A stretch of DNA of 64,000 bases from Selaginella moellendorffii (lineage: Eukaryota; Plantae; Lycopodiophyta). The position numbers and the translations under genes were made by a program. The notes beneath the pieces are model-generated. The model worked only from the letters and a program-made list of their open reading frames with translations, had not been told where the DNA came from and searched no databases. Below, in pieces: positions 30,851 through 63,733 of the stretch (position 1 is its first letter; the number at the start of each line of letters is the position of its first letter). The stretch covers positions 186,001 through 250,000 of the forward strand of contig NW_003314409.1 in assembly GCF_000143415.4 (NCBI RefSeq), written 5' to 3'.

Positions 30851-31193
30851 TACGCCCTTGCCTGTAGGAACATAAAGAAAGAAGCTAAAGGCCCTAACCC
30901 TCCTGAGCAAAGAAACCAAACCCATCAGTAAGGTTTAGATAGAGATACTAAAGGAGGCTTAAGGTGAAAGCCCAAAGCGTGTGTTCCTCGGGGGGGGGGG
31001 GGGGGGGGGGGTTTGGGGTGGGGTTTTGGGGGGTTCCCAATGTATAATAAGGATAATGGGTAAGTCGGGCATGGCCCACCAACCTGAGGGATGGGCTAAC
31101 TCCCCCTTGGGGGCCTGTCTTTTTTCTGGGTTTGGGTTGGGGCTAAACCCAAACTCCACACCATAATAGCTGGTGGAGTACCCATGTCCTTGC

Positions 31194-34100
31194 TGTGAGA
31201 CACAAAATCCCTAGGCCCCAAAGTGGAGCCGGAAGGGCGCCACATGGTAGTGGCCGAAGCGAGAGCCAAACGAGCGTAACACGTTTGGACCAAAAGCTCC
31301 GACTTGAAAAGTCAAGAGCGGGAGTGGAACTCCCAACGAAGTGCTCGAGGAACGAGCACGAAGCGAGCAAAAAGCAAGGCTCCAAAAAGGGACCCAAAAG
31401 GACCAACACATGACACGTGGAAGTGTCCGAGATGGACTCGAGTTGGAGTCCGAAGTGGAGTCCGAGATGGACTCGCGTTGGAGTCCGAAGTGGAGTCCGA
31501 GATGGACTTGAGTTGGAGTCCGAAGTGGAGTCCGAGATGGACCCGAGTTGGAGTCCGAAGTGGAGTCCGAGATGGACCCGAGTTGGAGTCCGAAGTGGAG
31601 TCCGAGATGGACCCGAGTTGGAGTCCGAAGTGGAGTCCGAGATGGACCCGAGTTGGAGTCCGAAGTGGAGTCCGAGCTGGACCCGAGTTGGAGTCCGAAG
31701 TGGAGTCCGAGATGGACCCGAGTTGGAGTCCGAAGTGGAGTCCGAGATGGACCCGAGTTGGAGTCCGAAGTGGAGTCCGAGATGGACCCGAGATGGAGTC
31801 CGAGATGGAGTCCGAGATGGAGTCCGAAGTCGAGACCGAGACCGGGACCGAGACCGAGACCGAGACCGAGATCGAGATCGGGACCGAGAATGAGACCGAG
31901 GCCGAGGCCGAGACCGAGCCCGAGCCCGAGTCCGAGTCCAAGTCCGAGTCCGAGTCCGAGTCCGAGTCCGAGTCCGAGTTCGAGTCTGAGAGGGTGAAAG
32001 CCCAAAGCGTTCGTCTCCCAGACCCTGGGGGGTTTGGTGAGCTCCAAAAGTATAGTAGGGGGAGGACTGCAGTGGAGCCAGTTTGGCCAGGAAAGGCCAG
32101 TTTGGCCCAGGAAGGCCGGACCCAGTGTTGGGTGATGAGCTGCCCACTGGGAAGTCCAAGACTAGAGTGAACACAGACCGACAAGCGGGGTAGCTTGGTG
32201 AAGTGTTCAAGAGCCGGCTCTAGTTCCCCCGGGAGATCGACTGGCCGATGCTCCCAGTCCAAGTGTGGGTGGCACTACCTACTTGGATACCTGGTGTGGC
32301 TCAACGGAACCCGCTCTAAGCCCATGGCTAGAGCACCCAAGGGCAGAAGGCGAGGAGAGTACCCAGGTGGCTCGCGTAAGGCCACGGTGTTCCGAAATGT
32401 TGTCCCAAAGGCCCAGACTGTGGAAAGGAAGAGGAGCAGTCCTCTGGGGTAGTGACCAAGGACACAGTCGTGTGGTGAGGAAGTCCCAGAGGACCGTGGG
32501 ACTTAGTGGTCGGGCCTGTGGGTCTCGATCCAGTGGCAGTGTTGGCAAACACGGCCAGGGGCAGAAAGGGACTTAGTGGGGACTGACAGAGGGATATTGG
32601 GGAAGGCTATTCCCCTTGTCGGTGGGCATCCTAAGGATGCTAAGGAGTGGATCTGAGATGACCATTCACGGATGGTTTTCCTAGTCTTGGAGAGCCAAGA
32701 CGGTGATGCAAGTGGTATTGGACTACCAGTGTGGCAAAGGTGATTGGGCATGGCCTTAGCGTAACGGGCTGCTATGTCGGTGGTACCTTTGAGTGTCGGT
32801 CATGGGATCGGACACGTGGAGCACTTGGACCAAGTGCAAATGTTGAGTGGCATGGATGCCATTCTCGGGGCTAGCAAGTCCCAAGTCCTGGATTGGACTT
32901 ATGGAGGTTGTGAATGAGACTCCTCCAAGTGGTCAGAGGTGTGGTTAAGTGACTAAAGTAGAATGGAAAATTTAGTCGCTTACAATTTGGTATCGGAGCC
33001 GTTCCTTAGTCCGACTTTTATTGGTGCTCAAGTATATCACCACTGGTGTTAGCAAGGAAGGTCCGAGAAGAGGGCCTATCCTTGAGGAGTAGCAGGTCGG
33101 GAAGATATGGCTCTCCATTACAGTTCATGTGTGAACTTGTAGACAAGGTGGTGGATAGAAAAGGGCCAATAATGGAACGACTTTGGGATCTTGGGGACAG
33201 TATATGGTTTTCCTCAAAGAGTTGAGGATGTGATCCAGATGAGCGTTTGACTTAGCAAACAGGCTAATGTAGTTGTGGTAAACAACTACAGTTGGGATCA
33301 CGGGAAAGATAGAGACTCCAAAAACAATAAAGGAGTCACAAGTTTATCCTCACCTGGTTGAGGCTGGTGCTCATGAAGGTGAGACCGGAATGGATGACCG
33401 TGAGAGGTCAAATACGGAAGAGGACTCAAGTCCTTGAAAAGGTAGCCGGGGCTACCTCTAATAAATGCTGGAACAACCCAAGGAGTTGGGGGTGTATTAA
33501 GTGGATGAGTTGGTGTTCTCATCACATGGACAAGTAGTCCTAAGGGGCAAAGGTTGCCCCCAGAGAACAAAATCAAGTGTCAGAGTAACACTTGTGAAAA
33601 TAGTCCTTTTGAGTAGGACAGGAATGCAAGAAGTGTATTCCAGTGAGCTAGTGCCTCACAAGTAGGACCTTACGGGTCTGTGGATTAACCAAGTCCAAAA
33701 CTGCTGGATGACTCAAGTAGAGTCAACGAATGGTCCTAAAAGGACTGATGGAAGCATTTGGACTGAGGTGTGTTGTACCCCACAAAGGATGGGGGGGGGG
33801 GGGATCATAGGATCCAAGGATGAGAACAGAGGGTATCTCATCGATGGCAAAATGTGCCATGCTAAAGTTATGGGAAAGGTGTTCCCAGAAGAAAACAACT
33901 TTGACATAAAGTTGTGTGTGACTTCTATGGTGCAGTGCTAACGGATGGTTGGCATGAGAAAGAGTGGTGTTGGTCTTGGCAAAGACATAAACACGAAGGG
34001 GAAATGTCATAGAGGTAGGCTCGTGGAGCCGATGGTGTGGAGACACCAAATGTGCCAAGGTGTGATACCTTAAGGCTATGTTGGTGGGTTCATGAGAACC

Positions 34101-37100
34101 CCTTGCAAAAGGAATCCCAATGGAAATGGGAATGGCATAGCCTAAGCTGCAGAGCATGCAGTTGGAGTGTGGTGACCTAGATAATGATGGAGGTGTGAAA
34201 GCACCAAACAATGAGTTGTAGGACTTGACAATTATGAGGCAACTAAGCAAGAGGTGCAAAATAACTGGTTGAACGGGTAGAAGGTAGCTACCCAAGACTT
34301 CTTAATAGCATAGGGAAGTCGAATACACCCTTACGGGGGATAAGTTGCTTGTGTTGCGATATAGTAAGTCAATGTCATAAAAGGAAATACTCATTGTCAA
34401 GAAAGCCATCATTGGGACACCCGAACACTCTAGAACACCAGAAGGTGGTGTTTGATGTCGCGAGGGCAATGGATAAGGCCCAAGGGACTAAGTCCCTAGC
34501 GAATGATGGATAGAAGGTGCTATCCAAATGTCCAAGGTTGCGGAGACAGGAGAAGACTATCTGCCCGAGTTGGACAAAGCCAAAAATAGAACTTTGGCAA
34601 GGCTAGTGATGGGCATGTAAAGGCCCATAAGCAACAATGTAATCCCAGTGTGTGGGGTTACAAGGTGAGCATACCCGGATTGAGGAACCACTCCCTGGGC
34701 TATTGGGTTGGTTCGTCCTTAGGAATCCTTGCTAAGGCATGATAGAAAGTGCAAAGCTATCCTCCTGGTCTGGAGGAGAATGACCAAAGGAAAGGTGTGA
34801 AGCCAAAAAGCAAGAAGTAAGGGGATAGAACCGAACCGTAGGAATCAAAGGGCATAACCAAGGTTGGTTATGCCAGCTGGGAGTGGAGAATCAAGTGGGG
34901 GCTCGAGGGTGTTGCTGCTAGCAACCGTGATGCCATGGAGAGTCTAAAATATGGAATTGTCCATGTTAGACTATGTGGCATTTGGAAGGCTTGCAAAAAG
35001 GGAGGCCTTAGCAAGCTGAGGGACAGAGTTCCTTCAAGGTTCCCAAAGATGATTCTAGGTAGTTTAGTACCTAGAAAGGCCAAGTGTAAATGGTTCATGG
35101 AACGCGTGAAATCGGAGTGGCGCAGCAGAAGCGTGGTCTTGAAGCTTGCCATGAGGCAAGGCTATCAAGGTTAGGGAAGTAGTTCCCGAGTGTTCAAAGA
35201 GAGGGCTTTGAACGAAAGTCGATGATCAAGGACTTTCACGCTTATGCAGGAACCATGTTACAATGGTCGAAGGACTTGCCAAGCGAGATTGGCACGTCGG
35301 GGGAACAAATACCCTAGTTGAAGGTGATAACTTCAAAAAGGGTGGGCCATGGGGCCGAGCATGGAGGAGTCCATGCATGATCACAGACATGTCAAGTGAG
35401 AGGACTTGGCAGTGTGGAGGAACTAGGTTCTTAAACTGTGATCTGTAGCGCGCTTTAAAAATAAGTTGGTGCACCGGCGTGGGGAGTCACGCCAGGCATC
35501 TTGTGTGATGCCGTCCGTAGATGCATATACGGAGGTTGGGTTCGAGTCCCGACCCTCTAGTGCTTGGGTTCGAGTCCCAAATCACTAGGGCGTGGTGATG
35601 GTTTGGAATATGAGGACACTCATATTTCGGTGGTCATGGACTCTCAGTGTGGAGACTGGTTTGGGCACACCGCCAAGCGAGGGATGCCTCGGAGTCGTGA
35701 TGCACGGTTAGATTGCTTAGTGTGAAAGCTTAGCATATCTAACTTGAACGCTTTGGTGCAAGTGGCACCAAGGTCGTGGTGAGTGAGATGGGGACACCTA
35801 ATCTCAGTTGCTATGAACCCTTGGCCGTAAGGGCTGGCTTGGGTGCACCGCCAAGTGTGGGGGATGCCCCCGGGGTTATAGTCAACAACTTGGAGGTCTA
35901 GAAGACCAAGTACCTCTTGGCAACTCTGTTAAGGTGCCAAGGTGAGATCACTAGGTGATCTTATGGCCAGATAAGGACAAGGTCCTTGGTTGGCTAAGGA
36001 ATGAAGTTCCTGGTTCAAAATGTTGAAATTGAACTGTTTAAGGTGGTGTGGCTTGGTCGTGATGACCAAGTGGGAAGAGCACCTAAGGGAAATAAACTAT
36101 GTCCGTGCGATGGCATAGTGAGTCCGAGGAAAGTAGTCTCTATAAAAGACCCATGGGAGGGTCACGAAGTTGGGCCGTGGATAGAGCCCATAGCAGAAGA
36201 TGCTAAAGAGACGTACTAGGGGTGAACATCCTCCGGACTTGGCAAAGAAGAGTCTTTGCTATGGAACCGAAATAATACCTCAAGAAGGGAGGTAGAGATT
36301 CGATGTTGCTTGGTGCAACAATCAACGGATAGGAACAAAAGATGAGTGGCCAAGATAGGGCCGTGGAATCCCTTGGAAGGAATCCAAGTGACAAAGTTAG
36401 GTGAGGAACACTAATGTGTTGGACGCTAACAAGTTGCGGGAAAGGAAGTGTGTTTCCAAGGAAGGATTCCGAAATGTTCCGATTTGGCGAAAGTGGAAGC
36501 TCCAAGGGAGGGAGCGGTAAGGTAGCCAAATGATAGGGCCATGAACAGCCCTAGCACAAAGTATGATAACCGGAACTTCAGCACGAAATAGAAGAGAGGA
36601 TGATGGTGCCCTCGAGTAGAGAACTTCCTAGGATGGGAAGTGGAGTTGCACAAAAGGTGCAAGGCAAGGTGTCGAAGACACCTAGGAAATTGACTCCAAG
36701 AAGTCAAAATTCAAAGTTCCAAAGTGCAAAGGTTATATCGATGGAAAGTGAGACTACTCGAGAAGGAGTAGTGGGATTGACTTAGAGAAGGGTCTCTAAG
36801 AGGTTTAGCGAGAACTAAACCAATAAAAGGAGAGAACCACTATATGTGGTCCAATCAGTCTTTAAGTTGGAGAGACTACCCTCCTTAGAGGATATGCAAA
36901 ATGCATGGTGAGCCTTCAATGTCACACCATTGACAAATATTGGCTACGCGCCAAGGATGGAAATGGTAACACATGCGGGTGTTACTTTATAAAATGGTTC
37001 ACCGTTCGATGAGGACATCGAACTTCGTCTATGGGTGGTGGAGTTGTGAGACACAAAATCCCTAGGCCCCAAAGTGGAGCCGGAAGGGCGCCACATGGTA

Positions 37101-38842
37101 GTGGCCGAAGCGAGAGCCAAACGAGCGTAACACGTTTGGACCAAAAGCTCCGACTTGAAAAGTCAAGAGCGGGAGTGGAACTCCCAACGAAGTGCTCGAG
37201 GAACGAGCACGAAGCGAGCAAAAAGCAAGGCTCCAAAAAGGGACCCAAAAGGACCAACACATGACACGTGGAAGTGTCCGAGATGGACTCGAGTTGGAGT
37301 CCGAAGTGGAGTCCGAGATGGACTCGCGTTGGAGTCCGAAGTGGAGTCCGAGATGGACTTGAGTTGGAGTCCGAAGTGGAGTCCGAGATGGACCCGAGTT
37401 GGAGTCCGAAGTGGAGTCCGAGATGGACCCGAGTTGGAGTCCGAAGTGGAGTCCGAGATGGACCCGAGTTGGAGTCCGAAGTGGAGTCCGAGATGGACCC
37501 GAGTTGGAGTCCGAAGTGGAGTCCGAGCTGGACCCGAGTTGGAGTCCGAAGTGGAGTCCGAGATGGACCCGAGTTGGAGTCCGAAGTGGAGTCCGAGATG
37601 GACCCGAGTTGGAGTCCGAAGTGGAGTCTGAGATGGACCCGAGATGGAGTCCGAGATGGAGTCCGAGATGGAGTCCGAAGTCGAGACCGAGACCGGGACC
37701 GAGACCGAGACCGAGACCGAGATCGAGATCGGGACCGAGAATGAGACCGAGGCCGAGGCCGAGACCGAGGCCGAGGCCGAGACCGAGCCCGAGCCCGAGT
37801 CCGAGTCCGAGTCCGAGTCCGAGTCCGAGTCCGAGTTCGAGTCTGAGAGGGTGAAAGCCCAAAGCGTTCGTCTCCCAGACCCTGGGGGGTTTGGTGAGCT
37901 CCAAAAGTATAGTAGGGGGAGGACTGCAGTGGAGCCAGTTTGGCCAGGAAAGGCCAGTTTGGCCCAGGAAGGCCGGACCCAGTGTTGGGTGATGAGCTGC
38001 CCACTGGGAAGTCCAAGACTAGAGTGAACACAGACCGACAAGCGGGGTAGCTTGGTGAAGTGTTCAAGAGCCGGCTCTAGTTCCCCCGGGAGATCGATTG
38101 GCCGATGCTCCCAGTCCAAGTGTGGGTGGCACTACCTACTTGGATACCTGGTGTGGCTCAACGGAACCCGCTCTAAGCCCATGGCTAGAGCACCCAAGGG
38201 CAGAAGGCGAGGAGAGTACCCAGGTGGCTCGCGTAAGGCCACGGTGTTCCGAAATGTTGTCCCAAAGGCCCAGACTGTGGAAAGGAAGAGGAGCAGTCCT
38301 CTGGGGTAGTGACCAAGGACACAGTCGTGTGGTGAGGAAGTCCCAGAGGACCGTGGGACTTAGTGGTCGGGCCTGTGGGTCTCGATCCAGTGGCAGTGTT
38401 GGCAAACACCGCCAGGGGCAGAAAGGGACTTAGTGGGGACTGACAGAGGGATATTGGGGAAGGCTATTCCCCTTGTCGGTGGGCATCCTAAGGATGCTAA
38501 GGAGTGGATCTGAGATGACCACTCACGGATGGTTTGCCTAAGTCTTGGAGAGCCAAGACGGTGATGCAAGTGGTATTGGACTACCAGTGTGGCAAAGGTG
38601 ATTGGGCATGGCCTTAGCGTAACGGGCTGCTATGTCGGTGGTACCTTTGAGTGTCGGTCATGGGATCGGACACGTGGAGCACTTGGACCAAGTGCAAATG
38701 TTGAGTGGCATGGATGCCATTCTCGGGGCTAGCAAGTCCCAAGTCCTGGATTGGACTTATGGAGGTTGTGAATGAGACTCCTTCAAGTGGTCAGAGGTGT
38801 GGTTAAGTGACTAAAGTAGAATGGAAAATTTAGTCGCTTACA
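31194..38842 (+). mobile_element. Intact, young, non-coding LTR retrotransposon (LARD-like, family B): LTRs 31194-32984 and 37045-38842
   Basis: TG..CA LTRs differing at only ~10 sites, TSD CTTGC on both sides, PBS TGGTATCGGAGCC at 32988, PPT-like tract 37031-37044; 4-kb internal region has no gag/pol ORF. Confidence 0.95.
31425..31986 (+). repeat. LTR-internal minisatellite: 35-bp unit x ~10, then 6-bp GAGACC/GAGTCC arrays
   Basis: Unit gatggacccgagttggagtccgaagtggagtccga; the same array is in the second LTR (~37276-37843). Confidence 0.95.
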
Positions 38843-39312
38843 CTTGCGTTAGGGTATGCCGAAATAGCACTAGACTCCGTTTGGCTTCGTTTTGCGTGCT
38901 GGTCCTAGCATTGGGATGCTGATTGCTTTAGGATTGTTCCAAGTCGCTCCGGGCTCCTATCCCTTCGCTCCTTGGGCTGTATGCTCGGGAGTTGCTCCGT
39001 GGTCTGGTTCCGTCACTCCTTGGCTCCATGCTTGGGAGTTTGGCACCGTTCCTTTGTTCAGTGGCCCAAGGCCTTGAACCTCGGGTCCACACCACATTCC
39101 TTTGGACACGTGGCATCTGTCATGTGGCATAAAGAGGGTTTAGGTTCTGCTTCGTGGTGTTATCCTATGGTAAATCACCATAGGATAAAGGGTCAAAACC
39201 ATGTGCGCTACAATTTTCAAATCTTGACAAATTCTAGATGCTTATGCTACCAATTAAGGAAAATAAATAACCCCAACATTAAGTGTGAATAGAATGTAAA
39301 TTCTTTTTTGGA

Positions 39313-40812
39313 TGTAAAACACAAATCCCTAAACCCTAAAGTGGAGCTGAAATTGGGCCAAATGATAGTGGCTAAAATAAAAGTTCAATGAGCATGATAT
39401 GTTTAAATCAAAAACTCTAATTGGGAAAGTTGAAAGTGGGAGTGGAACTCCCAAAGAAGTGCTTTAGGAACAAGTATGAAATTTCATATGATTTGATCCA
39501 TCAATGTAATTAAGAATGCAACCAACCCACCATGTGGGTGTAGCCTTCTTAAATCATACTAACCTTTTTTGGCCAAACTAATTCCACTGAAGTCCTCCTC
39601 TTATTATGGACTTACCAAACCCTTTATAGTCTAGGAGACAATTGCTTTGGGGTTTCACCTTTGGACTTGAACTCAGACTCAGACATGGACTTAGTCTCAG
39701 TCTCGAACTCGAACTTAATCTTAGTCTTGGACTTGAACTCAGTCTTAATCTTGGACTTGGACTCGGGCTTGGACTTGGTCTTGCTCTCAGCCTTGGTCTT
39801 GATCTTGGCCTTAGTCTCGGTTTCAGTCTTGGTCTCAGGCTCGAATTCCATTTCAAACCAAATCTTGAACTCCATCTCAAACTCAGCTTCTGCCTCCATC
39901 TCAGATCCGATCTCGGACTTAGTCTCAGAATTGGTCTTGAACTAGGTCTCGGACTCAATCTCGGATTCAATCTTAAACTCGGTCCTAACACTTTTATATA
40001 TCATAACACTTGCTATGTGTTGGTCCTTCTTATATCCCTCTTTAAAGTTACTTATCAATCCAAACTTAGTAAAGTGAAACATTTAACCACTAAAGAGTCC
40101 AAGGCTAAAATGAATATAGATGGATAAGTGGGGTGACTTGATGACCTTGTATGGCTTATTAGAATCTCATTCTAGCCACATGGTTGGGGCACTCTAATGG
40201 CAAAAGGTGGGAGGAGTATCTATGAGGCTTGTATTAGGCTTCAATATTTCAAAATATCATTCTAAAGTACTAGATTATAGAAGAATTATCCTTTTACTTA
40301 GTGACCAAAAGTATAGTTATGTTAAGGAAGTCCCAAAAGTTAATAAAACTTAGTGGTTAGTGTTTAGGCCTTTGGGCCTAACCCAATGGTGGTGTTAACA
40401 AGCACTGTCGTGGATGAAGAGAGACTTGGTGGGACTGAAGAAAAGACTAAAGGAGAGATATTAGATGGTGTTTTAGGGATGCTAAGTTGTGGTCATGGGA
40501 TGACTATACATGGACAGATGGCCCAATCTTGGGAAGGCAGGACTGTGGTACAAGTGGTCTTAGATTACTAATCAGATAATATGAATGGACATAGGTTTAT
40601 TGTCAATGGCACCTTTGTATGTCTGAAGTGGGATTAGACATGTAAAGCACTTGGATTATGTGCAAAATTGGTATGGTTTAGAAATCACATCTGAGGGATA
40701 ACAAATACCCCATGATAGATGAGGACCTATGAAGGTTGTAAGTGAAACTCCTCAAAGGAGTCAAGGGTTTGATTAAGTGACTAAAGTAGAATGACAAATT
40801 TAATCATTTACA
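39313..40812 (+). mobile_element. Old solo LTR related to family B, with an internal inversion (~39575-40040)
   Basis: Starts TGTAAAACACAAATCCC and ends TTTAATCATTTACA like the family B LTR; middle part, including the satellite, is reverse-complemented; strong C>T/G>A decay. Confidence 0.8.
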
Positions 40813-56257: not shown

Positions 56258-59200
56258 CTAATCTTTATTACAATTCTCATACTCTGTGACAAGCTCACGA
56301 GCATGTGTAAGATTACTAAGAGGCTCCCAAATTGATTCACAAGATGGGTAACCTTTCCACTTAATTAGATACTCTCGATATTTGGCATGCTTAAGCCAGT
56401 GTGTACCCAAAATAGCTTCCAATTCATATTTAGGTTCACCATCCACAACTTTTGGTGGTGGACGAATCTCCACTTGACGTGCATCATCCATAGTGTATGG
56501 AGCCAAGAGATTGGCATGAAATACATTATGAATATTAGACATCTCCGCAAGAAGATCCAACAATAGGATACATTACCAATGCGCCTCAACACCCGATAAA
56601 GTCCAACATATCTCAATAACAGCTTCCGAGATAAAGATCCCTTAATGTTCAAGTTCTGGAAAGATAGCCACACCTGATCTCCCACTTGATAGGATACATC
56701 TCGACGATGCTGATCCTTATCACGTTGATACCTATCCTGAGCTTTGCCCATTGCCTCAGTAACTCTAGACCAACCTTGGCATAGCTGCTCCGCATAAGTC
56801 TCAACGGCTGGGACCAACACTTCGAACATTGATTTCGGTATAACAATCTATTGAGGCACTCCACGAGCATTTCCTTGCAGTATCTCCCACGGGGAACAGC
56901 CAATAGTGCTATGAAATGTGTTGTTTTAACAAATTTTTGCTGTATTCAAATACTCAACCCAATCGTGTTGGTCCGCCGCGACATAGTACCACAGATAATC
57001 CTCAACTTGAGCATTCACGCGTTTGGTCTGCCCATCAGTTTGAGGATGATAAGCCGTATTGAATTTCAGCTTGGTACAAAACAACTGGAACAGTGTGCCC
57101 CAAAACTTCCCCATAAACCTTGAATCTCTATTCGAGATCATCTCTTCGGGAAGACCACAAAGTCACACTACTTCATGGAAAAAGAGTTTTGCTGCTTGTT
57201 TCGCATTCATTGTTCCCACAGTTGGAATGAAGTGTGCAATCTTCGACAACCGATCCACAACCACCATCAAAGTATCATAACCCTTAGACTTCAACAAGCA
57301 TGTGACGAAATCAAATGTCACACTCTGAAACAGCCATGCCGGTGTTGGAATGCACTACAACTTTCCAGCCTGCTTCTTAGCTCTACATTTACATTGCTGA
57401 CATATAGGGCAGAAACAGACATAGTCCGCTACATCACCTTCTATACCAGACCAGAAAAATCCCTTTTTCAATGAAGCTAGAGTCTTTTGCTTTCCACCAT
57501 GCCCTGCTGCCGAAACATCATGATGTTCCTATAGAAACAACTGCTGCAAATCCTTAGAGGGAAGATACAATCTTTCTTGCTTATAGAATATAAGCCCATC
57601 CCGAACTGAGAAGTGAAGCTTTGCATTAGTGCGGTTAGCAACTTTCACTGCCTCGCTACTAGAGTTCTTCTTCGACAACTCCACATGGTATAAGATTGCC
57701 TTCGCCAACGGATCACTTCCATACGAAGCCCAAACGTCCTCCAACCAGTCCGAACTGATTGCTGATATTGCCCGGAATTGAGCCTGACGACTCAATGCAT
57801 CCGGAACAATATTAGCTTTACCAGGTTTATATATGATTTCAATATCATATCTAGTAAGCTTCTTTTGCGAACGAGCCTACTTTGGCATAAGTTTAGGCTG
57901 CGTAGCAAAGTAGCTTAGTGTGTTACTATCCGTATAAACCTTGGTGTGTCCACCCAAGTAGTGTTCCAATATTCCAAGGCCGACACTATAGCAAACATCT
58001 CTTTCTCATGCGTTGGCCATCTTCATTGGGTCTCATCCAATTTCTTGGAATAGAATGCAACGGGACAACCATGTCGCCTTAGCGTAGCACCAACCGCTTT
58101 GTCACAATCTTTCTGCAACACGGCACTAATAGCAAAGCCAGATGCATCACAATGCACTTCAAAGGGTTTATCAAGATCTGGGATCTTGAGAACATGAACG
58201 ATAGTCAAGATCTCCTTCAACCGTACAAAAGCACGCTAACAAGTTGGTGTCCAATGAAATGGAATGTTACTCTTCGTCAACTCAGTCAACGAAAGAGCAA
58301 TTCTTGCAAAATTGCGGACAAACTTGCAATAGTATCCTGCCAAACCAAGAAAGGAACGAACATTTGATACAGTGGTCGGGACATCCTAGGACTTCACTGC
58401 TTCCACCTTCTTTGGATCAACTTCAATCACGCCACCACCAACTATATGTCTGAGAAAGTTTATGTGCAATTGACTAAAAGCGCATTTACTTTCTTTAGCA
58501 TACAGTTTGTGTTCGCGCAACTTCTGAAACACCAGCTCCAAGTGTTTCAAATGATCCTCCAACGTTTCACTAAAGACTAGAACATCGTCAATATACAGGA
58601 CAACAAATGCATCAAAATAATCTCTGAATATTCTATCCATCATAGTGCTGAACATTGCCGGAGCATTGCATAACCCGAATAGCATCACAAGGAACTCATA
58701 AGATTCGTACCGAGTCTTAAAGGCTGTTTTCTCCACATCTTGATCTACCACCTGTATCTGATGATACCCGAATTGCAAATCAAGTCGCATAAAATACTTA
58801 GCCTTTAAGAGTTGGTCAAACAAGCCATCAATGTGAGGCAAAGGATAACTGTTTTTAACCGTGATCTTGTTAAGTGCCTGATAGTCAATGCACATCCTCA
58901 TGGTTCCATCCTTTTTCATAACAAAAAGGACTGATACTCCATAAGGTGACTTGCTTGGTCAGATATGACCTTTGTCAAGAAGCTTTGTGAGTTGCTTCTT
59001 GAGTTCAGCCATCTCCTTAATGTTCAATCGATATGGAGCCTTTGTAGGTGGTTTAGAACCCGGAATAACCTCAATCTGATGATCAACCTCACGGCTAGGA
59101 GGTAACCCTGGCGGCAAATCCTTTGGGAAGATATCCTGATTCCTCACCAACAACTCTAATATCTTTTTTGGTACAGGATCAACCCTATCACCAATTCGAA

Positions 59201-60250
59201 TTGAGTCACCAACACCCTTAGCTTCTATCACTTGAACCCAAAAGGTCTGACATCCCCTTTTAGCTGCTTTTTGAGCGGCCCTCGCAGTCAGAAACTTTGC
59301 ATCCCAATCCTTTGAGGAACGCTTTTGCAACTGGAAGGACACATCGGGATGTCCTTCGGACTTCAACGTGATACGATTTTGTTTAGCACCATAAATCCCT
59401 TTTATATATTTGTTAAAGAAGTCCATACCAAACACCATCTGAAAATTTAGTATCTTCAACACAACCAAGTCCATTCTTTCTTTCCACTTGGATATCTTTA
59501 TTAGAACATCACTCACAAACTTTCTGGCTACTTGCCCACCTTCCGCAAACCGAAAGTGCATAGGCGACATTTGCTCAGTATTCAATCCTAGCAACTTAAC
59601 TAGGTCTTCGGATATCACGCTGTGCGTAGCTCCCGTGTCAACCATCACTCGGATTCGGTGTCCACGGACAAAGCCTACCAGATACATTAACAAATCAGTG
59701 TTTGCATTGACTGCAAGAAAAACTTGAGGAAAGCAATGAAAGTTACTCACCTCCTCTTCCTCATAGTCTACATTGACCAACTCGTCAACCCCTTTAACTT
59801 CATCACCACCGTCTTCCCTCATAATATTAACACGAGACTTTGTCTTATGCTTGTTGGGACATTCCAAGGACCTATGTCCTGACTCTCCACAATAGAAGCA
59901 ATGACCCACACTACCCGTTCCACTAGGAGCAGGTTTTGTAGGTTGCTGCTACTTATACCCACCAGGAGGAGGAACATAGGGCCTAGGACCAAAAGAAACT
60001 GTTGGTGGTCTCCAACCACCACCACCACCTTTGTTAACCATTGTTTGTGAGCCCCCAAAGTGGAACCTGCCTTCCACCCTCTGTTTCCGATCACCTTGTT
60101 TATTCCCAGAATTCTTATTCTTATCCGAGTTACCAGCATACGGTTGCTGATATTGTTCCATGAGCGAGTGACTAAAGGCAACTTACTGCACTGCCTCCTT
60201 ACACTCCAAGTATGTTTTCAGCTTAAACTTCAAAATCTCATTGCAAGAAA
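56258..60250 (-). mobile_element. Decayed Ty3/gypsy chromovirus: gag(CCHC)-PR-RT-RH-INT-chromodomain
   Basis: CFYCGESGHRSLEC, VDTGATHS, VLYIDDVLVFS, HCDASGFA, AYHPQTDGQT, YELEAIL..YLIKWKGYP..WEP; stops and frameshifts. Confidence 0.93.
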
Positions 60251-60389: not shown

Positions 60390-61752
60390 GGAATAACCAA
60401 GTGAATTGAGCTCCACATATCTGCAAGTTAAAACTATGAGAAACATCAACATGTGACCATGTATATACCTCATCTCGATGTCTCCAGAGACAATCACCAA
60501 GATGCATAATCACTCTCTCGTCCCCATTAGTTTGGTTAGCTGCCATTATAGCCAGGTTTTCCTGCCATTCTTCGAGCATTCCTTCTGCGTCCTGCAAGTC
60601 AACATGCACTCCTTAAGCAAGAGAGTAGCTTGATAAAAGTATTTCACCTGTGTTGCACCATCTACAGCAGACGCTGGAACCGGTTGAGGTTGAAGCGCTG
60701 TTACATTCGACAAATTAGTGTTCCCTACAAACACTCCGGCATGTTGACCAGCATAAAGAAGAGTTAGAGTCCAGAGGGGAAACCCTGGTTGAAACTGACA
60801 TTGAGCCATCTCCGCTATAGTGTCAGTGTAGAACTATTAAAAACCACAAGACCATCACTAACAGTCTATACATCAAAGCTACAAGACAAGGTACCTTCTC
60901 TCCCAGCTGCCGGGCCATAAGAAGAGCACATCCCCAAAGTTGCCCGTCTTGAGCAGCCCGTAAAGCCTCTTTCTGCTTTCCGGCAATCAGTAGCCTTTTC
61001 ACCTCAAATGCAGTTGCCTGTCGCCAGAAAGTCTTCGTTTGTATCAACTCAAGAGAAAAAGACTGCCCAACCTGCATTTGCTGTTCGGTTGGAGTTGTCT
61101 GTAGACAGCGAGAGCCAAAAGCCCATGACTCTACATCGCGCTCCTCCTTTATGTTCTCAAACAAAGCCTCGGCTTCATTCAAATGCCCTTTCCTGGCAAA
61201 TGCTGTGACGAGGACAGTCTGCGCAACGATCGTCTTCACGGGCATCCGATCAAACAAATCCTTGACAGAAGCTATCTTTCCACTGCGGATGCAAAGCGTG
61301 ATCATCACATTCCAAGAGATCTCGTTCTTCTCTGGAGCCAATTCGAAAACCTCTCGCGCTTTATCAAGATGCCCGTTGTCGGCATATGCCGTGACGATCG
61401 AGTTCCACGTCGAGGCATCTCGCCGGAGCATCCCATCGAACGTTCTGCGCGCTCGATTTAGATCTTTCGCCTGTGCGTAGGCCCGGATCGTGATGTTGGA
61501 GGAGAAGAGCTTAGGATTCTCTATGGATTCGAAGATTGCACGGGCGTCATCGACGCTGCCGCATTTGCCATACATCTGGACGAGCAGATTCGCGAGGTAT
61601 TTGTTGCGGCGGTGCTCGCTCTGCGCAATGCGGGCGTGGATTTGCGTCCCCTGTGACAGATCCCGGCAGTTCTTGAGCAGTGCTCCCCAGGAGAGCAAGC
61701 AATCCTCTGAGGTGTCTGTGGAAATCACGAAATTGGGGAAGAGCAATGCCAT
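60390..61752 (-). pseudogene. Chimera: N-terminal PPR motifs fused in frame to internal Sec16 exons; 3' end lost next to the chromovirus
   Basis: PPR up to ERDVESW (~61125), then CLQTTPTEQQMQ | ATAFEVKRLLIAGKQKEALRAAQDGQLWGCAL | FYTDTIAEMA | MLEEWQENLAIMAANQT..HLGDCLW, with GT-AG introns. Confidence 0.75.
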
Positions 61753-62023: not shown

Positions 62024-63733
62024 ATGAATTTCCATCTCTCTTTCTTGCTCCTCGAGATACTAGTGTTCTTGAGAGCTGTCGCCCTAAATTCGCCCCCACC
62101 GCTCACTCTCCGCCCAATTCCCTCATGGCGCAAGCTCCAGTTCCACTCGCGCCGCCTCTCGATGTTCTTCCACTTCGGCGTCAACACATTCACGGACTCG
62201 GAGCGTGGATCCGGCCACGAATCGCCCTCCATCTTCAACCCGGAGCGATTGAATGCGTCGCAGTGGATGGAAGCGGCCCAATCCGCGGGCGCGCAGCTCG
62301 TGATCCTCACGGTCAAGCACCACGACGGGTTCTGCCTGTGGCCCTCGGCCTACACCAATTTCTCCGTGGCTAGCAGCTCTTGGCGAGGAGGGAAGGGGGA
62401 TGTGGTGGCCGAGTTCGTGGCCGCCGCCAGGGAGCGTGGATTGGACGTGGGCTTTTATCTCTCGCCATGGGATTTGCACGAGAGCTGCTATGGCGACACT
62501 CTTCTCTACAACGAGTTCTACTTGGCTCAGCTCCGAGAGCTTCTTACTGGGTGAGTGAGACATTCTTTGCTTCTTCTTCACGCATTTTTCTTGGTGGCAT
62601 GATCACTGTGTGATATGTTTGCATTTGCTCCAGCCCATCAAACGGTTTTAGCATTAGGAACTCGCGAGCTTGTGGGCTTTTGTAGTTTTCATCTCTAGCA
62701 GCAGATGCCTTGACGCGGCATTTTGTTTTGGCCTGCAGATATGGGCCGATCTCCGAGGTGTGGCTGGATGGTGCGAAATCACCCACTGCAGTGAACATGA
62801 GCTACGATTTTGAGCTCTGGTTTGACACGATTCATCAGCTGCAACCCGGTGCCAACATCTTTTCCGACGCTGGCCCTGACATCCGATGGGTTGGGAACGA
62901 GTATGGCGAGGCCGGACAACCATGCTGGGCGATGGCGAACAGATCTTCCATTACGATAGGCAGGAGCGATGGCCAGTACGTAAATTCCATCCTTGCATGA
63001 AACTTTTGTTCTCGTGAAACTCGATCCAATTCGCAACATCAACAGGTACTTGATGTCTGGAGAGAGTGCTGGAACCGACTGGCTCCCTCCGGAGTGCGAT
63101 ATGTCCATCAGGCCCGGTTGGTTTTGGCACAGGAACGAGGCTCCAAAATCCCTGGAGCAGCTGCTCGACGTTTTCTACAAATCATCCGCCAGGAACTGCT
63201 TGCTCCTGCTCAACGTCCCTCCAAACTCGTCGGGACTGATCGACGAATCCGACTTCCAGACGCTGGAGCGGTTTAGCTCCGCCATAGATTCCATCTTCAG
63301 CGTCAACTTAGCAGCGAATCCCTTGTCCGTGACAGCAAGCAGCGTTCGCAGCTCTTCGTTCGGGCCGAAGCAAATCCTTGACGAGCGTATGGAAACTTTC
63401 TGGGCTCCAATGCAAGGGGAGTCGACTGGCTGGATCGAGCTTGATCTTGGCAAGGTCTCAAAGTTCAACGCACTGGAGATCCGAGAGCCAGTAAACATGG
63501 GACAAAGGGTAAAGGAATATCATGTCGAGGCATGGGACAGCGAGCTGGGCTGGTACCTGGTGAGCAACGGTAGCACCATTGGTTACAGGAAAGTGGATCG
63601 ACTGGAAGAGGATCAAGAATGTGCTGCTCGGCTCGTTCGACTGCTGATTGACGCGTCGCGGGGAGATCCATTGATCTGCTTCTTTGGTTTGTACTTCGAT
63701 ATGTACAACCTCAGGCACTTGTCTTCTATTTAG
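62024..63733 (+). CDS. FUC1: Alpha-L-fucosidase, GH29 (exons 62024-62550, 62739-62975, 63046-63733)
   Basis: Signal peptide, MFFHFGVNTF, KHHDGFCLWPS, EVWLDGA nucleophile motif, ECDMSIRPGWFW, C-terminal F5/8-like domain. Confidence 0.93.

Follow-up and report, generated by a model that had tools for sequence, protein, structure and literature searches.

A young LARD-type retrotransposon of Selaginella moellendorffii with an element-wide excess of short local hairpins

It is an open question how non-autonomous long terminal repeat (LTR) elements that encode no protein come to prevail over their autonomous partners, and such elements can fill a large share of big plant genomes. A stretch of 64,000 nucleotides (nt) from the lycophyte Selaginella moellendorffii (NCBI RefSeq assembly GCF_000143415.4, contig NW_003314409.1, positions 186,001 to 250,000 of the forward strand; hereafter the window, with positions counted from its first letter) raises this question in a concrete form. 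It contains a complete 7.65-kb LTR element at 31194-38842, which lacks coding capacity and which an earlier reading of the letters alone (the original prediction) had described as a near-continuous chain of short hairpins. Do these hairpins exceed what chance would provide, and have they been kept by selection or left behind by the way in which the element is copied? A 10-25-fold excess of short hairpins is the only measurable property of the interior of this element, which makes it a concrete, mutable handle: stems could be broken and restored without touching any protein, and effects on packaging, stability and silencing could thus be separated.

The element and its hairpin excess

A direct-repeat search pairs a 5' LTR of 1791 nt with TG...CA ends (31194-32984, plus strand, terminating in TTACA) with a 3' LTR of 1798 nt (37045-38842, plus strand), and the element is flanked by identical copies of the target-site duplication cttgc at 31189-31193 and 38843-38847. 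The two LTRs, which are 1.8 kb each, differ by 11 substitutions and two indel events in 1791 nt (0.6%), with five substitutions in the 1205 nt outside their tandem part. This low divergence indicates that the copy is young, and if a grass-type substitution rate applies, the insertion would be on the order of 10^5 years old. The outer borders, the near-identity of the LTRs and the perfect target-site duplication had all been predicted correctly.

The LTRs enclose an internal domain of 4060 nt (32985-37044, plus strand), which carries near its start a primer-binding site (PBS) of the tRNA-iMet type (tggtatcggagcc, 32988-33000, plus strand), which we take to match the usual plant TGGTATCAGAGC PBS, and ends with a run resembling a polypurine tract (PPT; gggtggtggag, 37031-37044, plus strand, with the purine-rich run itself at 37033-37043) that adjoins the 3' LTR. 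The longest stop-free stretch on the plus strand of the interior amounts to 110 amino acids, and there is no long sense open reading frame (ORF). The twenty longest stop-free translated stretches of the two strands matched no Pfam entry at an E better than 0.1. A permissive Rfam scan (E up to 1) returned no family in the interior, ARAGORN found no tRNA there, and searches of the protein database revealed no relatives of either a spurious ORF in the interior or an ORF in the LTR. The element thus combines direct LTRs with TG...CA ends and a target-site duplication, a PBS and a PPT, and a large protein-free interior that is conserved, at the level of sequencing reads, among many genomic copies. 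By structure, it belongs to the non-autonomous LTR retrotransposons of the large retrotransposon derivative (LARD) type, and its description as an ORF-less LARD was borne out.

The evidence on the rest of the family comes from public sequencing runs at the read level. DNA runs from several studies of the same organism, together with an air metagenome, contain 50-73% of the sampled interior 31-mers, and 138,473 contigs of one DNA run match the family at no less than 90% identity, over 5.25 kb. In that run, the depth of the LTR is approximately twice that of the interior, as expected with many solo LTRs, and the differences from copy to copy are dominated by transitions. A 2.6-kb contig from another run differs by ~1.6%. 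Two search patterns that allowed for transitions, derived from the interior and from the LTR, respectively, had no match in the metagenome contigs scanned.

Hairpins were counted as maximal perfect Watson-Crick stems with loops of 3-10 nt and were compared with dinucleotide shuffles. The interior holds 55 perfect stems of at least 6 base pairs (bp) against 6.2±1.9 in shuffled sequence (z≈26, with no shuffle near the observed number) and 25 that reach 7 bp or more (1.2 in shuffles), while perfect stems of 5, 6, 7 and at least 8 bp number 37, 18, 15 and 7, with 12.1, 2.6, 0.6 and 0.25 expected, respectively. Stems with one mismatch or one bulge are also enriched, 2-9-fold. Altogether, the interior has ~60 perfect and ~30 imperfect hairpins beyond those expected by chance, about one per 45 nt, with stems of 5-10 bp and loops mostly of 4-6 nt. 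The hairpins quoted as examples in the original prediction are all present at or near their places, and its eye count of well over 100 exceeds the number that stands above chance; local folding of the interior yields 142 hairpins.

The excess extends to the LTR outside its tandem part (z 5.3 at 31990-32982 and z 7.6 at 31194-31410) and ends with the element. Each 1-kb bin between 31 and 39 kb has a z of 4-17, whereas the other 56 bins of the window are all at 3.3 or below, once a low-complexity repeat at 40-44 kb is filtered out. When stems of 6 bp or more are counted in eight 4-kb control regions, seven of these have a z between -0.7 and 2.9, and the eighth (40-44 kb) is high only through that repeat, which inflates naive counts. 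A Ty3/gypsy fragment at 56365-59909 (minus strand) served as the coding control, and the region around it (56-60 kb) shows no comparable excess (z 1.7 at the same stem length). Folding energies point the same way: in 100-nt windows, the mean z of the minimum free energy (MFE) is -1.8 on the plus strand and -2.2 on the minus strand, compared to -0.1 to -0.4 in the controls. The 300 nt at 35900-36199 reach an MFE z of -4.6 (plus) and -6.3 (minus), and a 300-nt reverse-transcriptase-coding stretch of the gypsy element reaches -2.2. The hairpin excess is real, element-wide and restricted to the element, and it suggests, short of proof, that the element owes its continued mobility to folded RNA.

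An origin of the pattern in chance, base composition or assembly error is effectively refuted by these comparisons. It is true that weak hairpins can be strung into a chain on any sequence, and in shuffled versions of the interior about 57% of the bases are paired, compared to 60% in the real one; however, the z against dinucleotide shuffles is about 26, the remaining 56 kb of the window stay at background, and the presence of the interior 31-mers in independent public runs speaks against an error of assembly. What is unusual is the quality and locality of the stems rather than the fraction of bases paired, and the predicted chain therefore stands as an element-wide excess, while its wall-to-wall appearance was overstated.

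Spacing, span and composition of the stems

Inverted repeats are in excess only when their arms lie 3-8 nt apart, with a peak of 13-30-fold at 4-6 nt; arms 0-1 nt apart, or 14 nt and more, show no excess. Direct repeats were counted within 36 nt, and their number (30, with 32.6 expected) reveals no enrichment. This spacing, together with the lack of a direct-repeat excess, indicates that the stems are fold-back hairpins whose arms are not reused, rather than a decayed tandem array, which agrees with the earlier statement that they are not a tandem repeat. Long-range inverted repeats show no excess either, and in 200-nt folds the median span of a pair is 17 nt, compared to 30 nt in shuffles. 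The longest perfect stems measure ~10-11 bp, and R-U5 and the interior contain no inverted repeat of 20 nt or more, the best candidates being 18-19 nt at 78-83% complementarity.

Such dimensions are those that would be found if pairing had been selected as a shield of the non-translated RNA against silencing or decay, by the RNA-induced silencing complex (RISC), RNA-dependent RNA polymerases or Dicer, instead of for the capture of Gag. The lengths of the perfect stems and the lack of longer inverted repeats fit the earlier suggestion that duplexes are kept too short for Dicer, pairing is short-range, and both strands fold locally, which would slow the annealing of sense and antisense RNA. The absence of long duplexes is, however, also what chance alone gives, and a family that is nearly silent in two RNA-seq runs, as described below, displays no obvious escape from silencing, and hence we regard such a shield as improbable.

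The composition of the stems raises a further possibility at the level of DNA. Perfect stems contain eight CpG dinucleotides against 58 expected from base frequencies, an observed/expected ratio of 0.14, compared to 0.61 outside the stems; TG and CA are raised in the stems (32985-37044). Interrupted palindromes might act as protein-binding sites, as cruciform-prone DNA or as a chromatin signal, and both the strong depletion of stem CpG and the strand symmetry of the signal, discussed below, would suit such a role. Nevertheless, ~90 palindromes of unrelated sequence cannot all serve one factor, and only one modest recurring motif, itself strand-specific, was found. Furthermore, stable cruciforms require longer arms than the 5-8 bp available here, and the CpG deficit is explicable by a faster loss of CpG-bearing stems, because of which we do not use it as evidence of selection. 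A DNA-level role is therefore very improbable.

Selection on pairing or a by-product of copying

The reading that we favour, with a probability of about 0.42, is that this young and very abundant LARD-type copy belongs to an active lineage in which dense local hairpins have been maintained, preferentially as a platform for Gag/nucleocapsid. The whole transcribed body (U3, R-U5 and the 4-kb interior) carries dense short local hairpins, and according to this reading the genomic RNA, possibly together with single-stranded cDNA, would benefit from dense local folding. The most likely role would be that of a stem-loop platform that offers many sites and has loops containing unpaired G, which would compete for the Gag/nucleocapsid of an autonomous partner, and as a side benefit the RNA would remain locally folded with no long duplex. 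New hairpins would probably arise from short fold-back or template-switch copying combined with local duplication of hairpin modules. Retroviral nucleocapsid proteins are known to favour unpaired G in stem-loops (PMC6088434). Both the selection on pairing and its function are matters that we infer, going beyond the anatomy, counts and geometry described above, and the core of the proposal, that pairing has been kept by selection on single-stranded forms of the element, is offered tentatively, at slightly below even odds. A stronger version, in which the hairpin chain is an evolved RNA-only payload, a kilobase-scale array of independent stem-loops that makes the element a better competitor for the partner's Gag/nucleocapsid or shields it from silencing, seems doubtful to us; if true, it would account for the abundance of the family in the genome.

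Maintenance in the active lineage is supported on several grounds. The excess is large, specific to the element and confined to the narrow 3-8 nt hairpin spacing; random overwriting would leave A-A'-A overlaps, and direct repeats are not in excess; and the signal belongs to the active lineage and is lost in an old solo LTR. The comparators for pairing were this old, diverged LTR and one internal duplication. The solo LTR, a decayed member of a related family (39313-40812, plus strand), lies 470 bp downstream of the element in the same orientation, and blastn aligns it at 67-73% identity at both LTR ends, a match confirmed by alignment, while its middle part is not alignable. It retains no CpG, has a GC content of 38% and lacks any excess of hairpins. 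Of the eight hairpins in the 3' part of the young LTR, six persist in it in decayed form, one of them fully paired despite two both-sided changes, and the shared hairpins therefore predate the split and are perfect only in the active lineage.

The internal duplication consists of module A, with three hairpins (35591-35705, plus strand), and module B (35765-35885, plus strand), whose cores are significantly homologous (Smith-Waterman score of 34 against 15.1±2.2 in shuffles). In the alignment, the two modules have hairpins at matching places built from different stem sequences, including an in-register exchange of A-T to G-C. In addition, over 16 sites at which the family majority departs from the present copy, the majority base is on average slightly more stabilising, by -0.44 kcal/mol. 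The retained pairing in the duplicated module and in the old LTR hints at maintenance and, with the loss of the excess from the decayed copy, is suggestive, short of proof, of the selected payload that the original prediction had proposed. Differences from another copy fall in stems in 4 of 40 cases against 25% expected (p=0.03), a comparison that is biased by defining the stems as perfect in this copy, and the avoidance of stems is not significant in the unbiased subset.

Other observations weigh against the favoured reading. Folding of the minus strand is no weaker than that of the plus strand, and the stems are strand-symmetric and Watson-Crick. The original prediction had held that non-Watson-Crick pairs are mostly G-U on the plus strand and mark the sense RNA as the strand that folds, a view that the data do not support: the 25 single mismatches in stems comprise seven G:T, two A:C and 16 others, G:T occurs just beyond the ends of perfect stems at the rate predicted from composition, and on either strand shuffled sequence has more G-U pairs than the real one. 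Plus-strand G-U enrichment was sought in three ways, beyond stem ends, among internal mismatches and in the share of MFE pairs, and none was significant. Given the strand symmetry and the lack of a clear G-U signature, nothing ties the signal to the sense RNA. The purine-rich loops that had been noted are present, but the interior is 60% purine and C-poor and shuffled sequence folds with nearly the same loop composition, which indicates that these loops mostly reflect base composition. Between the old and the young LTR, stems are conserved no better than non-stems (64% versus 65%, p=0.9). The hairpins of the duplicated modules are conserved partly via a register shift and not by clean in-register compensation, and some between-copy differences are adjacent or clustered and make or break a stem jointly (36579/36580), which is also expected from template switching. 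On the side of expression, the RNA-seq check proposed earlier returned 5 and 11 reads from 9.2 million records each in two runs, in which the family is essentially silent. Finally, neither an autonomous partner nor a partner Gag was identified, and the element has no LTR in common with the Ty3/gypsy fragment at 56-60 kb.

Some of these features would also fit if the hairpins were a functionless by-product of mutation, produced by template-switch (fold-back) copying by reverse transcriptase or during replication and left unpurged in non-coding sequence. The observed spacing is sharply limited to 3-8 nt, even though the energies of RNA loops hardly change between 3 and 9 nt, and the stems are mostly perfect, with fairly sharp ends, in addition to being strand-symmetric. 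The clustered differences that make or break a stem together and the register shifts between modules fit as well. Template switching is known to generate hairpins, to keep them intact and to imitate compensatory changes (PMC8794818), and reverse transcriptase extends fold-back hairpins of minus-strand DNA (PMC6088434). Overwriting at such a density nevertheless predicts A-A'-A overlaps and extra direct repeats, none of which are seen, and one-directional copying of a purine-rich background should leave an arm asymmetry that is lacking: the difference between G and C in the arms of stems of at least 6 bp (p=0.03) vanishes at 5 bp or more. The hairpins shared with the old LTR are long-lived, yet perfect in the active lineage, and the Ty3/gypsy element of the window has no comparable excess, which coding constraint could explain. 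We judge a purely mutational origin to be somewhat less likely than maintained pairing. If it is true, the family would document with unusual clarity what reverse transcription makes of sequence under no constraint, and would be a warning for claims of function that are based on structure.

Relation to known elements and genomic surroundings

The element resembles several known systems. LARDs, such as Sukkula of the Triticeae, have long LTRs and multi-kb interiors that lack gag and pol and carry a PBS and a PPT, and they are non-autonomous and abundant with many solo LTRs, as is the element described here. They are reported to specify conserved RNA secondary structures in their interior (PMC7215508, citing Kalendar 2004). 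The description as cited there is one of conserved folds and not of an element-wide 10-25-fold excess of short perfect hairpins with 4-6-nt loops, and LTRs of about 4.4 kb contrast with 1.8 kb in our case; the comparison with Sukkula is one of structure. LARDs and their RNA structure are thus already known, while the literature searched contains no description of an element-wide excess of short hairpins.

Packaging signals, including the Psi stem-loops and the 5' structured domain of Ty1, resemble the present hairpins in that short stem-loops with an unpaired G in the loop are preferred nucleocapsid sites (PMC6088434), and a protein-free element must be packaged in trans. Known signals differ in that they comprise a few hairpins, located close to the 5' end in a segment of some 100-400 nt, whereas the excess here spans the whole 7.6 kb. 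The hairpins ascribed to template switching by Mönttinen and Löytynoja (PMC8794818) share perfect short inverted repeats, short spacers and multi-base changes that look compensatory; these were described for DNA replication in cellular genomes at scattered sites, and not as saturating a retroelement. Terminal-repeat retrotransposons in miniature (TRIMs) of the Cassandra type and retrozymes are also protein-free LTR elements in which RNA structure is thought to matter. Their cargo, however, is recognisable (5S rRNA and a hammerhead ribozyme, respectively), and the present element is far larger and has no Rfam match.

Other classes of non-autonomous element were considered and rejected. A TRIM is ruled out by the size of 7.65 kb and the 1.8-kb LTRs, as TRIMs range from ~1 kb or less to a few kb and have short LTRs. 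A TR-GAG element, which would have a single ORF for Gag, is ruled out by the lack of a Gag or zinc-knuckle match in any translated stretch. A cargo element of the retrozyme or Cassandra type is ruled out likewise, since the Rfam scan (E up to 1) gave sub-threshold chance matches only.

Both LTRs carry tandem arrays, namely ~11 repeats of a 35-nt unit and a CCGAGA array, which in the 5' LTR occupy 31425-31978 (plus strand) with 11.3 copies of the former followed by 32 of the latter according to Tandem Repeats Finder; a 6-bp hairpin is possible within the 35-nt unit itself. A TATA-like promoter module (ccaaaagtatagtaggg, 31992-32060, plus strand) follows and probably marks the U3/R border. At the other end of the LTR, just 5' of the PBS, a terminal U5 hairpin (32947-32981, plus strand) has an 11-bp stem that includes one G-T pair and a 13-nt loop.

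The interior contains several minor features. Two tandem 28-nt units at 35534-35591 (plus strand) each form a hairpin with a 5-bp stem and the loop TTCGAGT, which resembles a tRNA T-arm or an RNA polymerase III (Pol III) B-box, and may represent captured fragments of tRNAs or sites of the TFIIIC type. In 32985-37044, the motif CCAAGGT(G) occurs more often than expected and in a strand-specific manner (CCAAGG, 11 against 2.1 expected; CAAGGT, 11 against 2.0), with the reverse complements of both hexamers seen 0-3 times, and it resembles the 5' splice-site consensus. A run of 12 G lies at 33793-33804. A 2.6-kb public contig (run X17) joins the LTR end at 32985 directly to 35290, so that the PBS and the initial 2.3 kb of interior sequence are missing; this contig, which is of moderate depth and comes from a run only guessed to be RNA, is a deletion derivative of the family.

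The TATA-like module (gaaagcccaaagcg ... ccaaaagtatagtaggg) of the LTR at 31992-32060 recurs on the minus strand at ~54960-54880 and ~54530-54450, and an LTR end followed by a PBS (gttaca tt tggtatcagagg) is found on the minus strand at ~54585-54565, from which it seems that other LTR families in the window share the promoter module. The Ty3/gypsy fragment used as the coding control encodes a zinc knuckle, a protease, a reverse transcriptase and a Tf2-type SH3 domain, and no LTR pair was detected for it. Beyond it, an ORF with PPR repeats (60823-61752, minus strand) and ORFs with alpha-L-fucosidase and F5/8 type C domains (62024-63733, plus strand) are host genes that adjoin the transposon cluster.

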